Shown here: one piece after another, positions 6,908-62,470 of the stretch
How positions within the stretch are numbered: the stretch's first letter is position 1
How the letters are laid out: the number at the start of each line of letters is the position of its first letter
Source: Octopus sinensis
Lineage: Eukaryota
Assembly (NCBI RefSeq): GCF_006345805.1
Contig: NW_021833976.1
Span: 1,228-65,227 of the forward strand
Reading direction: 5' to 3'
DNA length: 64,000 nt
The notes under the pieces: model-generated
What the model was told of the DNA's origin: nothing
Database searches by the model: none
The model's input: only the letters and a program-made list of their open reading frames with translations
Program-made: the position numbers and the translations under genes

Positions 6908-7099
6908 GAAAGAAGGTTTGAAAATGCAATTTAAAAGATGTTTATTTACTTAACCGGTTTCACTCTTTGGTAAAAGATTGTCAAAAGTAACATTTAATAA
7001 TATGGGTTATTCAATCTTACTTTTGACAATCTTTTACCAAAGAGTGAAACCGGTTAAGTAAATAAACATCTTTTAAATTGCATTTTCAAACCTTCTTTC
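6908..7099. repeat. Perfect 83-bp inverted repeat (fold-back) with 26-bp spacer, each arm carrying an HHR motif
   Basis: 6908-6990 is the exact reverse complement of 7017-7099; TA-rich flanks. Confidence 0.95.
7017..7061 (+). ncRNA. Type I hammerhead motif, U3-A8 core variant (family F6); mirror copy on - strand at 6946-6990
   Basis: Stem I TTACTT/AAGTAA, core TTGACAA, stem II TCTTT/AAAGA, GAAA, palindromic ACCGGT, predicted cleavage after 7055. Confidence 0.65.
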
Positions 7100-7224
7100 G
7101 TATATATATATATAATATATATATATTATATATATATATATATATATATATATAATATATATATATATATGTAATATATATATATATATATATATATATA
7201 TATATTATATGTATGTATATGATG

Positions 7225-7370
7225 AGTCTCCTTTCATTTTTCGTCTAAAACATATCTTGACGTGGCTTTGATCGGTCAGTGGCTATAGTAGAATACACTT
7301 GCCCAAGTTGCCGCGTAATGGAACTGAACTCAGAACCATGTGGTTGATAAGCACAGTACATCCTACACAC
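7225..7370 (-). mobile_element. Degenerate SINE-A fragment
   Basis: ACACTTGCCCAAG and GAACTGAACTCAGAACCATGTGG match the reverse complement of the SINE-A head. Confidence 0.7.
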
Positions 7371-7765
7371 ACATTGTTCCAAAGACCTTTTTATAACTTA
7401 TTGACCATTCTATGCGTGAGGGAAATGTTCTAGAAATTTCAAATTACTGTACTTTGGACGTCGTATACCCGTGTCTACATTTCCAAAAAATGTCTTCTTG
7501 ATAGGACAAATACAATCATATAGGCAACATTCAAACAGCATTTCCATATGCATTTCCGCAAACAATTGAATAAAAGCATATTGCAACTAAACCTCAACAA
7601 AACAGCAGCAAAGAGATGACCAATTCTAAGTACACCAAACATTACTCTTAAAGATCATAAATTTCAACTTACTACTGACACAAATTCCATAACATGTATT
7701 CTCCAGAACCAACCAAGCACTATATTTTAAGGAATTACTATATGTTAGCATAATGCGGTATTATA

Positions 7766-7994
7766 GGCGGCGAGCTGGCAGAAACGTTAGCACGCCGGGC
7801 GAAATGCTTAGCGGTATTTCGTCTGCGTTACGTTGTGAGTTCAAAATCCGCCGAGGTAGACTTTGCCTTTCATCCTTTCGGGGTCGATAAATTAAGTACC
7901 AGTTACGCACTGGGTCGATGTAATCGACTTAATACCTATGTCTGTCCTTGTTTGTCCCCTCTGTGTTTAGCCCCTTGTGGGTAATAAAGAAATA
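7766..7994 (+). mobile_element. SINE-B, full length, with TSD GGTATTATA
   Basis: TSD at 7757-7765 and 7995-8003. Confidence 0.92.
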
Positions 7995-9997
7995 GGTATT
8001 ATAGAATTTCATCGCGTTCCAACTATGAAACTATACTTCTCAAATCTTATATTTTGCCAATACCATCAATCAAGCAATTAATATGCAATGAATAGCATCA
8101 CTCACAAATACATCAGTCTTAGTCTTGTTGACACATTTGATTTAAAATGCGCAGAAATTTCTCGTTATCCGCCACACCAGTTGCATGAATAATTCTTATC
8201 TTGTTAAGCAGATTGATAAGTGGATGGAATAAAATAAAACAATGACAGATCTAGGAAATTATTAATAGATTATATCCAGTGTTATATATGAGATGATATC
8301 AATCGCCATCCATCTATCAATCCATCCATTCATCTATCCATCTGTCCATCCATCCATAATACATACATATATATGTGCGTGGATTAGAGCATATGTGTGT
8401 GCGTGTGCATATGTGTTTGTGTGTGTGTGTGTATATGTGTTTGTGTGTGTGTGTGTAAGAGAGAGAGAGAGAGAGAGAGAGAGAGAGAGACAAAGGTGAT
8501 AGGATTTGGATATAATATATTTAGCGATTCCGACCTCTTTAATGTTTCATATTTAAAGATTTCTTATAAAAAGAAAAAAATGCCTACCTTATATATCAAA
8601 TATCTGAAAACCACTTGGATTTGAAACAGGTTTGGAAAGAGTGTATTTGCGAGTGGTCATGTGAGATGTCCTTTGTCATTTTAAATTTATATGTGTGTAT
8701 GGTTATATATGGATGCGTATATGTGGATGTGTATATGTGTGTGTATATATGTGTGTGCTATGAGTTTAGGAAAGTGTGTTTTCCTGCGATGGCAGGTCAC
8801 AGAGTCAAATTATTTCATGAATTATTTCATGAGTTACAAAATAATTCACTTAGTTATGGTGTGAAAGACATTTTTAGTTCAATTGCCTTGTTGGCCTGTG
8901 GCACAAAACAGAGTTTTATCGAGTTATTTGGGGTGGCTTTGAAATATCTGCGTGTCTCTAAATGAGTTTAAGTGACGCGTGTGAGGGAATATCTGTATGT
9001 GTGTGTATATGGGTGTTTTGTGCGTTTGCGTGCGCGTGTGTGCGTGTGTTTTTTGTTGTTGTGTAAGCGAATTTGTCCAGTTACTTTAGCAGTAGTCATT
9101 ACATCATTATTAATAATGACATGCAATGGCCATCTGGATTGGTTCATCTGCAGGACAATTATTTTCTAATCTTCTCACTATTACATTGCTTTAGATTAGA
9201 TAATACGTCGCATAAAAAGTAGTCCCATTGCCTTCTGGTATATTGGATAACCTTGGGGGTATTTGTAGAAAGGAAAGAAGTTGAATCTGCTGTTTCCGAA
9301 TATTTCCAGATGCTTCCTGAGAGGAGTTTACGTAATTCTTTTTGTATGATGGGTTGTCGGTGGATTCCTATACGTTGGCAAGAAGACTTGTAGGTTTCAA
9401 AAACAAATTTACTTTGCACAAGCTTTCAGCATATTACAATCTCCGTCTTGCAGTTCTTTTTTTTTGCATTTTTATTTGCAAGTCGAATCCACTTTAAAAT
9501 TTAATATGGGAACTTGTTTCCAAAGAGTTGATTTTTTTCTTGTTCTTCTTGCGTATTTTACATCTATTGTTCCGTATACCTTCACACAAAATACTAAATT
9601 GCCCTCTGATGCGAATGTTGCCCTTGTGAACTATCCTTTTTATATTTACAGTTTGTTGTGAGATTTTCCTCAACTAAATTTCTCATTTTGGGATTTTTAA
9701 AGGTAATTGTTGATTTGTTTTACTGTTTAAAAATACTACACGCCAGGAATGTGCGTACTCATAAACGGATCAGCATTTCCTTTAATTTTTTGTCCATAGT
9801 TGATCTCTGTTTTATGAAGTCTAGTTTTATTGCTTCTATAATTCAATTATTTATAAATTTTATGGAGGAACTGTATTGTTTGAGAAGTCTTTAAGCTCAC
9901 TGAGTCGAGTCTGATGTATTTTTGGTTCAACTACTATTGCACTAAATAGATACGTGTGTATGTACGTGTGCGTGTGTGTATTCCCGAAACACTTTTA

Positions 9998-60003: not shown

Positions 60004-60868
60004 CCACTCTACGATAGCAAAATATTGAAGAATCATTATGAGCCCTGCAAAAATAAATGTATTTGTCACTGACGTCGAAGCTACAAAGCTAACTGAATTG
60101 ATTTCAGATAGAAAATTAATGATTCGTGATTCTAATAAAGAGACTTGTTTCAGTGAGAAATACGGCATATTGGTTTTTGAGAACGCATTGACAATACTAG
60201 GAAATTGACGTCAATTTGCGGGCTTAGCATAATGCAGATTTAAATTGTATAATGTAAAAGTTACAATGTAAATTAAATAGGATTTGCGTGTTTTGAAGTG
60301 AGGCGATTTAATCAGGTTATATTTAAACTAAATTCATAGAAATAAACCACTTACTGGAAATTCGTCAGTAATTTGACAGCGATCACATGATCTGATATGG
60401 TATAAGTACTTTTTGCTTAAACGAACTCAGAGTGAAGTTACAGTTCATAGCAGAAGTTAACAGAAAGTCGTCGCATTAATGAGAATATCGGTAACTGTGA
60501 ATTGTAAAATAAATTAGCAAAAAGTAAATTTCATACGTTCCAGTAGACGAATAATGAAACGAGCTAACAATTTCTTTTCGCTTCGGTTGCTACATACTAC
60601 TTGAAAGACAGCAGTAAATTGAACGATTGCACGACCAAAAAATAATCGTAATTTTGAAATAAATTATGACAAGTGATCTCTGTTGATATTGTCATATGCT
60701 GCGGAATTACTAATATCTCACAAATATATATATAGGTCATTGAATGTGTAGCGACGTAGCAAATTTGTCATTACAAATATATTCGAAGGTAATAGCTGCA
60801 ACACAAAAATTTAAAAGCTCATATAAATCTTAAATTCTAAAAAAATATATCAATATATTATAGATATA

Positions 60869-61279
60869 GGCGCAGGGGTGGCTGTGTGGTAAGTAGCTTG
60901 CTAACCAACCACATGGTTCCGGGTTCAGTCCCACTGCGTGGCATCTTGGGCAAGTGTCTTCTGCTATAGCCCCGGGCCGACCAATGCCTTGTGAGTGGAT
61001 TTGGTAGACGGAAACTGCAAGAAGCCTGTCGTATATATGTATATATATGTATGTGTGTGTGTTTGTGTGTCTGTGTTTGTTCCCCTAGCATTGCTTGACA
61101 ACCGATGCTGGTGTGTTTACGTCCCCGTCACTTAGCGGTTCGGCAAAAAGAGACCGATAGAATAAGTATTGGGCTTACAAAAAGAATGAGTCCCGGGGTC
61201 GAGTTGCTCGACTAAAAGGCGGTGCTCCAGCATGGCCGCAGTCAAAATGACTGAAACAAGTAAAAGAAAGAAAGAAAGA
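60869..61279 (+). mobile_element. SINE-A
   Basis: GGCGCAGGGGTGGCTGTGTGG head; tail grades into (GAAA)n. Confidence 0.92.
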
Positions 61280-61681
61280 ATACAATATAACGGCAACCAC
61301 AAATACATAAATATATCCAGGCGATAGTTGCAAGGGTTGCAATTGAACACGGCTGAAAAGGAAAGATAAAACCCAGTGGAATGGGAATGATGCCAGCATG
61401 GACTTGAATAGGCATACTAGTCAGTCGATAGAATAATTGTGGTTTCACATCAGTGGGGAGACTAGAGCGTCGAAGTGTCGTCAAGAGGCAGGCCCCGAAA
61501 CGCTGCATATTCTCTCCTTAGGACTCCTGAAACCTGCACTCGGGAGTTTTCGACTTACTGCAGAGGTTTCAATGCACTGCACTTGCACTATGCATAGTAT
61601 TATTATTATTATTGTTGTTGTTGTTATCATTATTACTATTATTATTATTATTATTATATTATTATTATTATTATTATTATT

Positions 61682-61930
61682 GAGTGAGAGAGCAGTTCAT
61701 GCCATCAAAGTGACACTGGGGTAAAATATACGAAGCCCAATATACCCATCATGACTACCCGTCTGATAAAGGTACACCAGGCACATGCATCACAACCATA
61801 TGTGCGCGACATGGTGATCTCATATCAAGATAAACAGCGCATGAATTTGCAGGTGGGGCCCAGTTAGAATTTTCTTCAGGTCGAGTAGCCCATCCCGCTC
61901 AAAAGGTCCCTGAATAAGGGTTGTTTAAGG
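61682..61930 (-). mobile_element. Probable non-LTR retrotransposon 3' fragment embedded in (TAA)n
   Basis: 249-bp GC-richer insert flanked on both sides by long (ATT)n; clade (R4/Dong-like) is inferred only from target type. Confidence 0.45.
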
Positions 61931-62009
61931 ATTATTATTATTATTATTATTATTATTATTATTATTATTATTATTATTATTATTATTATTATTATTATTA
62001 TTGTAACAT

Positions 62010-62470
62010 ATAGTATAATTATAAACAGGGCAAAAAATGAACAACCATGATCGATGTTCGAACCTTACTGGGTTTTCATCAGAGATGCCTACATTATCCT
62101 GAAATGCTTTTGAGTTGCGTGTATTTACTATATATACATAATTGAGTTGAAAACTGTCTTATGACATTTCACTTAACGTCTATGTCCACTGCTCGCATGG
62201 ATTCGAGAGTTATTAATGTAGAAATTTGGTATCTCAGCTACTAGCATTTGAAACCCACGGAATCTAGAAGGTGTTTTTAAATTTCATTATTGTCTTTAAC
62301 CCGAGCAACGCCGGGTATTTCTGCTAGTATGGTATAATTATAAACCGTGCAAATTTTAAAGCCATTTGTCTGTAGACTGAAAAAAATGATGAACAATCTT
62401 AATCGATTTTCAAATCTTATTGGGTACTCTTCAGAGGCGGCTGCATCATTCTGACAGTCACCAGAGAATC
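62010..62470 (-). mobile_element. Old ~350-bp tandem pair with decayed HHR motifs (F7)
   Basis: Motifs at 62046-62086 (ATCT-CTGATGA-AAACC/GGTT) and 62396-62438 (CTGAAGA...GAAA-ATCGAT-TA-AGAT); both units open with GTATAATTATAAAC. Confidence 0.5.
62296..62327 (+). mobile_element. Helitron 3' terminus
   Basis: CCCGAGCAACGCCGGG hairpin, then CTGCTAG|T; 5' end not located. Confidence 0.65.

Follow-up and report, generated by a model that had tools for sequence, protein, structure and literature searches.

Four emergent features define the minimal hammerhead ribozymes of Penelope-like elements (PLEs): each genome has many consensus families, an additional nucleotide separates A9 from position 10.1, a G10.1-C11.1 pair is present, and the 15.2-16.2 segment is palindromic. 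Their stem II is long and their stem I short, and U3-A8 occurs among them as a variant of the core (Cervera & de la Pena 2014, PMC4209133). Metazoan genomes contain thousands of such copies, which are highly variable and mostly solo, with some in tandem and some close together on opposite strands; most published copies lie away from full PLEs (PMC4209133). Tandem type I hammerhead retrozymes have been described in animals (Cervera & de la Pena 2020, PMC7229834). A study of Xenopus counted 57 families of retrozymes (Li et al. 2026, bioRxiv 10.64898/2026.07.22.740005), and retrozymes were argued to derive from the pseudo-long terminal repeats (pseudo-LTRs) of PLEs (bioRxiv 10.64898/2026.07.22.740005). 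Here we analysed a 64,000-nucleotide (nt) stretch of Octopus sinensis DNA (assembly GCF_006345805.1, contig NW_021833976.1, positions 1,228 to 65,227; "the window", in whose own coordinates all positions are given). Our results showed that it contains five families of short repeats (called A, B, C, D and F6), each with a hammerhead layout on its sense strand.

Two descriptors were used, both following the published definition of minimal hammerheads: a stem I of at least 4 base pairs (bp), the core, 0-1 extra nucleotide, a stem II of at least 3 bp, GAA, A15.1, a self-complementary segment, U16.1, an H17 that is not G, and the second strand of stem I. The chance expectation was taken from dinucleotide shuffles. 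The reversed sequence served as a second control, and a fair one, because it preserves all repeats and the composition. An initial strict scan with stem II directly after A9 gave no match because an extra nucleotide follows A9. The canonical core CUGANGA gave 1 match (A1 of family A; 0.025 expected in shuffles), and the CCGANGA core gave 2 matches in separate families (C and D; 0.01 expected in shuffles). When any single core mismatch was allowed, 5 matches were obtained, against 0.42 ± 0.53 in shuffles (maximum 2) and 0 in the reversed sequence. A relaxed descriptor, in which stem II bulges and near-palindromes are allowed, found 8 matches, against 0.43 ± 0.67 in shuffles (maximum 3) and 0 in the reversed sequence. 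These fell in family A (one), families B, C and F6 (two each) and one singleton.

The five families are real and non-random, and together they comprise 16 motifs and one half motif. They share the type I layout of stem I, core, stem II, GAAA, self-complementary stem III, H17 and stem I. A preliminary description of the window, made from the sequence alone, had counted seven families and about 17 motifs. Its motif count agrees with ours, and the palindromic or near-palindromic stem III that it reported is confirmed in the five families; its two other families, F5 and F7, fail. The variant cores that it listed (CCGAUGA, CCGACGA and UUGACAA) are present in the window, and the changes that they contain are natural variants documented before. 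U3-A8 was described in PMC4209133 and PMC3088659; U4C strongly lowers activity in vitro, yet it sustains viroid infectivity (PMC3088659).

Family A forms a tandem array on the minus strand (51258..51812), where two 284-nt units carry one motif each (Tandem Repeats Finder period 283, 2.0 copies, 95% matches). The best motif is A1 (51616-51661(-), GACAC-CUGAUGA-A-GGUUGG(8 nt)UCAGCC-GAA-ACGU-U-GUGUU), with the canonical core, an extra A after A9 and G10.1-C11.1. Its stem III is a palindrome of 4 nt, and its stem I has 5 bp. A2 (51332-51377(-)) differs from A1 in stem III only, which reads ACGA with an A at 16.1. Cleavage is predicted after U51621 and after U51337. A3 (39260-39304(-)) is a solo copy; relative to A1, its stem II has C-G in place of one U.G pair and has lost another pair, and its stem I is missing the outermost pair. 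A4 (39349-39392(+)) lies inverted and head-to-head to A3. It is 5'-truncated at stem I, and its core has decayed (CUGAUCA, with GAAA turned into UAUA).

Family B has a tandem of two 554-nt units with 96% identity (29178..30134(-)), which terminates directly after CCCTCAATTTTTA, at (TA)n. B1 (29469-29546(-), GAAUGUA-CUGAUGA-A-GUC(37 nt)GAC-C-GAA-ACCGAGGU-A-UGCAUUU) has the canonical core, a 7-bp stem I and an 8-nt near-palindromic stem III, where 6 of the 8 positions are paired and the central pair is G.A/A.G. Its stem II is closed by 3 bp only, plus an A.C mismatch or bulge. The sequence of B2 (30023-30100(-)) is the same, and cleavage is predicted after A30030 and after A29476. An inverted partner, B4 (30134..30355(+)), is joined head-to-head with B2. 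It is truncated inside loop 2, retains only the 3' half of the motif (30134-30158(+)) and has its 3' end at (AT)n(TG)n. The solo copy B3 (12565..12886(+), 322 bp) is 5'-truncated with (AT)n on either side, and its motif (12645-12722(+)) has decayed (CUGAAAGAUGA, with an extra C ahead of GAAA). The circular B monomer gave a fold z of -4.7, more negative than that of the antisense strand.

Family C consists of two arrays that meet head-to-head at about 56080. The plus array (56079..57448(+)) holds about 2.6 units of 529-533 nt with its 3' end at (TA)n, and carries the motif CGAG-CCGAUGA-U-AGA(17 nt)UCU-U-GAA-ACGUACGU-U-CUCG at 56142-56195, 56672-56723 and 57208-57257 (all +), for which cleavage is predicted after 56190, 56719 and 57252. 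The minus array (54871..56083(-)) holds about 2.3 units and ends just past CCCTCAATTGTTAAATTAT, at (AT)n. Its two motifs (55675-55724 and 55152-55203, both on the minus strand) each have single-base deletions. The circular C monomer was also more strongly folded than its antisense strand (z = -4.4).

Family D includes two 150-bp copies lying 2.9 kb apart, separated by AT-rich, non-coding DNA. The element D2 (38704..38853(-)) carries the motif GUUU-CCGACGA-A-GAGC(UCC)GCUC-GAA-AACGU(U)-AAAC (38766-38801), with a U4C core, an extra A after A9, the G10.1-C11.1 pair and the palindrome AACGUU. The motif of D1 (element 35806..35954(-), motif 35871-35905) is as in D2, with stem III and H17 displaced by one indel (GAAACGUUUAAC). 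A third copy, D3 (46076..46168(-)), is 5'-truncated and has no hammerhead. Its 3' terminus, TTGGATTAACT next to (TA)n, is the one also seen in D2, and this common end establishes the sense strand of the family. A diverged relative at 26617..26669(+) has the core CUGUCGA, stem II GAGC(GUAG)GCUC, GAGA in place of GAAA and no palindrome. Its local alignment to D2 scored 29, compared with 18.1 ± 2.5 in shuffles, where 2 of 500 reached 29. It retains U4 and has A6U. The U4C of family D looks one step away from a canonical CUGACGA ancestor because this relative keeps U4. A further relative of family D was seen at 3704-3742(-).

F6 is an inverted repeat (6908..7099) with two 93-nt arms (6908-7000 and 7007-7099) that are 98% identical and joined by their 5' ends; its right end is at (TA)n. 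The motifs, 6946-6990(-) and 7017-7061(+), read UUACUU-UUGACAA-UCUUU(UACC)AAAGA-GU-GAA-ACCGGU-U-AAGUAA. Their core is of the U3-A8 type, stem I has 6 bp, stem III is a palindrome, and G12 is preceded by two extra nucleotides. F6 passes the descriptor only if two extra nucleotides are allowed between stem II and G12, and taken alone it is within the chance rate. Neither D nor F6 occurs in tandem.

We compared these motifs position by position with the published definitions. The C3-U4-G5-A6-N7-G8-A9 box is canonical in A1-A3 and B1-B2, carries U4C in all C and D copies, and is of the U3-A8 type in F6. G12-A13-A14 together with A15.1-U16.1 and an H17 that is not G were found in A1, A3, B1-B2, three to four of the five C copies, D1-D2 and F6; A2 has A at 16.1, and the set is lost in A4 and blurred in B3. 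Over the families, stem I ranges from 4 to 7 bp and stem II from 3 to 6 bp. Between A9 and 10.1, families A, B and D have an A and family C has a U, and F6 is ambiguous there; G10.1-C11.1 is present in A and D. The 15.2-16.2 segment is palindromic or nearly so in all five: ACGU (A), ACCGAGGU (B), ACGUACGU (C), AACGUU (D) and ACCGGU (F6). Judged by sequence, families A and D have all the features of PLE minimal hammerheads. On the retrozyme side, tandem units with one type I hammerhead each occur in A (2 units), B (2) and C (2.3 and 2.6), and the GC content of these units is 0.33-0.39, below 45% as in animal retrozymes (PMC7229834).

Several candidates of the screens were rejected. The singleton at 3662-3707 was a chance match whose "core" is the 5' end of a D-like unit, and another singleton, found around 59882 with the single-mismatch descriptor, was a chance match inside a repeat resembling a short interspersed nuclear element (SINE). 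The F7 candidate of the preliminary description (62393-62441(-), CUGAAGA ... GAAA-AUCGAUU) is a single copy with no stem II and 2 contiguous stem I pairs. For F5, with the core CUGUNGA, none of 16 sites forms a repeat family with the layout, and the sites at 15.7, 48.3 and 51.1 kb belong to a repeat without GAAA. The best CUGUNGA site is the diverged family D relative at 26617-26669(+), which is probably part of F5. The repeat family without GAAA, with the core-like CUGUGGA (15691-15884, 48042-48431, 50870-51265, 34227-34429, 24503-24674 and 44247-44437), has the sequence ACACGUGU-CUGUGGA-GUG(CUCAGC)CAC-UUGCACGU, a hairpin that mimics hammerhead stem I, core and stem II; the family A array starts where one of its copies ends. 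The array also directly adjoins one copy (51822-52228) of a dispersed repeat that also occurs at 5334-5849 and 26740-27270, with an internal 100-bp tandem at 5483-5750 and 51876-52076.

PLE insertions are known to include partial tandems, an adjacent inverted 5'-truncated copy and a bias to microsatellite targets (Craig et al., PMC8557442). A PLE enzyme was shown to cleave and extend both DNA strands and to begin reverse transcription at two internal sites (Frangieh et al., PMC11167929). In the window, head-to-head junctions were observed in four families: A3/A4 at about 39.33 kb, B2/B4 at 30134, the C arrays at about 56080, and the F6 arms at 7000-7007. Both partners of each pair are 5'-truncated with their 3' ends outward, and most of these outward ends border on (TA)n or (CA)n. 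The strand set by the shared 3' ends and the 5' truncation is the one that carries the motif in all five families. No poly(A) or tails of the long interspersed nuclear element (LINE) type were found on the elements. The head-to-head geometry is as described for PLEs (PMC8557442) and fits extension on both strands (PMC11167929).

Families B and C are related in one part only. Their global alignment was not significant (z = -0.8), and the families are otherwise unalignable. They share a block of about 50 nt at an equal offset from the predicted cleavage site (B 229-284, C 233-281), whose local score of 42 exceeded that of 1000 GC-matched genomic controls (20.1 ± 3.0, maximum 29). The B array and the C minus array both terminate just after CCCTCAATT of this block, and the other B copies and the C plus array terminate about 90-100 nt upstream, at a second equivalent site. 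A weaker block common to A and C lies at the upstream one of these two terminus sites, and its score was reached by 6 of 1000 controls. Stems I and III are wholly different between B and C and are still paired or palindromic in each, which, read from the sequences, is the only covariation-like evidence here. Beside these families, a tandem of two 253-bp units without a hammerhead (37054-37565) bears the B/C module of about 55 nt (GACACTGGTTTaAATTGAtTAT...), and so does a separate fragment at 22470-22550(-). The shared module hints at a wider superfamily, of which the ribozyme would be an optional part. The sequence TTTAAATTGA, considered as a common tag that includes F6, was not enriched (17 matches versus 16.7 expected) and was dropped.

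Taken together, we consider the hammerhead-bearing repeats of the window to be short non-autonomous retroelements from at least five unrelated families, with minimal type I hammerheads of the PLE kind on their sense strands; they would be processed by dimer cleavage of multimers and mobilised by a PLE in trans (probability about 0.75). The preliminary description had also proposed non-autonomous, ribozyme-bearing repeats of the PLE or retrozyme type with a dimer-type stem III, and the tandems, the head-to-head partners, the (TA)n and the sense-strand motifs all fit this. It had further not recognised the population as characterised; an uncharacterised kind is not supported, as the kind is described in PMC4209133 (2014), PMC7229834 (2020) and bioRxiv 10.64898/2026.07.22.740005.

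The proposed cycle depends on stem III. Stem III is reduced to a self-complementary, loop-less segment of 4-8 nt, and a single copy would therefore be unable to close the three-way junction; as modelled, the stem can form solely between two copies. With two copies, either within a multimeric transcript or on separate RNAs, base pairing between the stem III segments and an exchange of stem I strands would give a double hammerhead, in which each core would cut the other copy after H17. The tandem arrays, with units of 284 nt in A, 554 nt in B and about 530 nt in C, would be transcribed, and dimeric cleavage would yield unit-length RNA with 5'-OH and 2',3'-cyclic phosphate ends, which host tRNA ligase may circularise. 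A PLE reverse transcriptase/endonuclease acting in trans may then copy the multimeric or circular RNA into (TA)n, priming on both cleaved DNA strands. Such priming could produce both the tandems of more than unit length and the head-to-head 5'-truncated partners. Of this picture, the motifs with their excess over chance, their arrangement and placement on the sense strand, the junctions with microsatellites and the 3'-terminal module common to B and C are direct observations, and cleavage, dimer formation, RNA circles and the PLE partner are inferred. Families C and D, with U4C, and F6 are probably weak or dead ribozymes that are still spreading.

A number of our results weigh against this reading. 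The Rfam hammerhead models gave no match in the window at the gathering threshold, and none at E <= 10 for the whole window, a 6.5-kb slice or a 101-nt slice around A1. Such silence is to be expected of loop-less stem III variants, which escaped canonical descriptors too (PMC4209133). The double-hammerhead fold was energetically feasible, and in no prediction was it the dimer of minimum energy. The A monomer shows no unusual degree of structure (circular fold z = -0.2). Families C and D carry U4C, which by analogy would weaken them, as this change is known to cut activity in vitro (PMC3088659). F6 has its two extra nucleotides before G12, and three families lack G10.1-C11.1: B, where A.C or a 3' bulge takes its place, C, which has A-U and a U bulge instead, and F6. 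The B (554 nt) and C (529-533 nt) units are longer than the published 150-450 bp, within which A (284 nt) falls. No PLE reverse-transcriptase or GIY-YIG coding was found in the window by Pfam on 10 open reading frames (ORFs) or by a six-frame motif search, which returned a LINE-like box only; the reverse-transcriptase remnants in the window look LINE-like. Among copies within a family there are no compensatory changes, and family A has just three one-sided changes compatible with pairing. Conservation of the motifs is no higher than that of their flanks, and A4 and B3, which are truncated at the 5' end or solo, have lost intact cores; such a pattern is expected of insertions that decay neutrally. 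Finally, hammerhead cleavage is dispensable for PLE insertion in vitro (PMC11167929).

It is possible, with clearly lower probability, that the hammerheads are relics, especially in C, D and F6, and that the elements spread without cleavage, with tandems arising by reverse-transcriptase read-through, template jumping or unequal crossing-over. The insertion of hammerhead-dead PLE RNA in vitro agrees with this, as do the presence of U4C in every C and D copy, the irregular G12 side of F6 and the hammerhead-free 253-bp tandem with the B/C 3' module. The 26.6-kb D relative, with its U4 and its A6U, suggests in addition that both it and family D drifted from a CUGACGA ancestor. Against it stand the fully canonical cores within the tandem units of A and B, the complete layout on the sense strand of five unrelated families, and the support of viroid infectivity in vivo by a U4C hammerhead (PMC3088659).

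Mobilisation by a LINE instead of a PLE is unlikely. On this view, SINE-like hammerhead retroposons would be mobilised by a LINE, as is described for Schistosoma Sm-alpha, with inverted partners formed by twin priming on multimeric RNA. LINE-type reverse-transcriptase remnants do occur in the window and a PLE ORF does not, and both shared 3' modules and 5' truncation with common 3' ends are typical of or compatible with such SINE-LINE partnerships. The elements nevertheless lack poly(A) or LINE-type tails, and the two arms of each inverted pair represent an identical portion of the element, each ending at the target, which fits both-strand extension (PMC11167929); the loop-less palindromic stem III and the (TA)n targets are PLE signatures (PMC4209133, PMC8557442). 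That the layouts are a chance resemblance in AT-rich repeats, multiplied by copy number, is very improbable. Relaxed descriptors do give about 0.4 false matches per window, the singletons at 3662-3707 and about 59882 are chance, F5 and F7 fail, and F6 alone could be a foldback or a miniature inverted-repeat transposable element flanked by TA. Against this, five independent families were found where about 0.4-0.8 would be expected, the reversed sequence with all repeats kept gave 0, the motif is on the same strand in all five families, and the PLE-type context agrees.

Within the preferred reading of PLE-mobilised hammerhead elements, a more speculative extension, which we regard as improbable, is that B, C, the 37-kb tandem and the 22.5-kb fragment form one superfamily. 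The 3' module of about 55 nt (GACACTGGTTTaAATTGAtTAT...CCCTCAATT) would mark two reverse-transcriptase start sites about 90-100 nt apart, and hammerheads would have been gained, swapped or lost on it, including a U4C core that works in vivo. If so, the ribozyme would be an exchangeable passenger of a PLE-dependent vehicle and not its defining part.

Further searches gave little. Sub-threshold Rfam matches (mir-297, mir-3149, mir-466 and others) all lie on TA/TG microsatellites, e.g. at 23029-23099 and 34181-34242, and these microRNA-like matches are artefacts. Extra copies outside the window were sought in two metagenome scans, one with a family A pattern and one with an 18-mer of a SINE-like repeat, which gave 0 and 24 chance matches, respectively; none of the 24 resembled window DNA. 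Sequence strings from the window were not found in the texts of papers searched for them, and the ORF of family A had no record. A MAFFT alignment across the families was unusable as the basis for a covariance model.

The surroundings look like metazoan non-coding DNA, with a GC content of 0.26-0.45 and dozens of microsatellites. None of the 10 window ORFs searched had a relevant Pfam match, and no intact ORF with a Pfam match was found at the hammerhead-bearing locus; the location appears non-coding. Frameshifted remnants of LINE-type reverse transcriptase lie at 46719-47668(+) and 53966-54234(-), with the boxes INLDQSNAFSR and RQGSPLSSLLY. The top database relative is just 52% identical (PF00078) and comes from an unrelated ENA contig without DNA similarity. 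Two abundant kinds of SINE-like repeat are present, which may resemble repeats of cephalopods. One, of about 235 bp, has solo copies at 3013-3248, 7765-8000, 21284-21777, 35521-35754, 39946-40161, 52479-52705, 53628-53857 and 54600-54832, and a part of it also builds a 183-bp satellite of 24 units (16098-20518). The satellite and the dispersed repeat are a SINE turning into a satellite. The other kind, of about 400 bp, has 11 copies with an internal (TA)n(TG)n microsatellite (23-432, 10664-11095, 11860-12302, 15043-15437, 24152-24506, 26060-26470, 28709-29203, 43122-43503, 58708-59104, 60878-61267 and 63012-63417). A box B of the tRNA type is visible by eye in its head, and ARAGORN called no tRNA in the window, this head included. 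An interstitial telomere-type repeat of the TTAGGG kind, (CCCTAA)3-4, sits within a tandem dimer at 10243-10514 whose units measure 141-147 bp; no hammerhead core adjoins it.

The window adds one more genome with a dense and diverse population of minimal hammerheads or retrozymes, a kind which is already well characterised, and current understanding is unchanged by it. The main signatures of PLE-type insertion, namely tandems, head-to-head 5'-truncated partners and (TA)n targets, occur next to one another in its compact locus. The 3' module shared by B and C, with its two equivalent terminus sites, could serve as a lead to the enzyme that mobilises them and to the sites where it starts. Arrays have been formed both by families with a canonical core and by families with a U4C core, which bears on the need for cleavage in spreading.

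Compared with known systems, the more distant ones share single aspects with the window. Double-hammerhead processing is known from satellite 2 of the newt and from avocado sunblotch viroid (Forster et al. 1988, cited in PMC4209133), where two copies within a multimeric transcript pair and so rescue an unstable stem III, as proposed here; these ribozymes keep a looped stem III of 2-3 bp, whereas the window has the palindrome only. Schistosoma Sm-alpha/Sj-alpha (cited in PMC6765202) are also short non-autonomous retroposons with type I hammerheads, both arrayed and dispersed. In contrast, Sm-alpha elements are described with a promoter followed by a canonical fast-cleaving hammerhead (PMC6765202), and the hammerheads of the window are minimal and of the dimer type, with no promoter box identified. 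Animal retrozymes are closer. Like the elements of the window, they are apparently non-coding, low-GC tandems with one type I hammerhead per unit, ranging from dimers and short multimers to solo monomers, and the B and C monomers are strongly paired. They differ in that their hammerheads are mostly canonical, with a short looped stem III and loop-loop contacts where stem III is loop-less in the window, and in their size of 150-450 bp against 529-554 nt for B and C; the A monomer, moreover, is not unusually structured. In comparison with the PLE minimal hammerheads, the window lacks a flanking ORF with reverse transcriptase and GIY-YIG, and its motifs are not the pseudo-LTRs of a visible PLE; B, C and F6 are without G10.1-C11.1, and two families carry U4C. 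The agreement covers the rest of the architecture. The published hammerheads (PMC4209133; Lunse, Weinberg & Breaker 2017, cited in PMC6765202) and those of the window are both of type I, without a stem III loop and with a palindromic 15.2-16.2 segment. Both also have an unpaired nucleotide after A9, a stem I of 4-7 bp, a long or irregular stem II and the U3-A8 variant, and in both, many unrelated families occur as copies that are solo, in tandem or close together on opposite strands.

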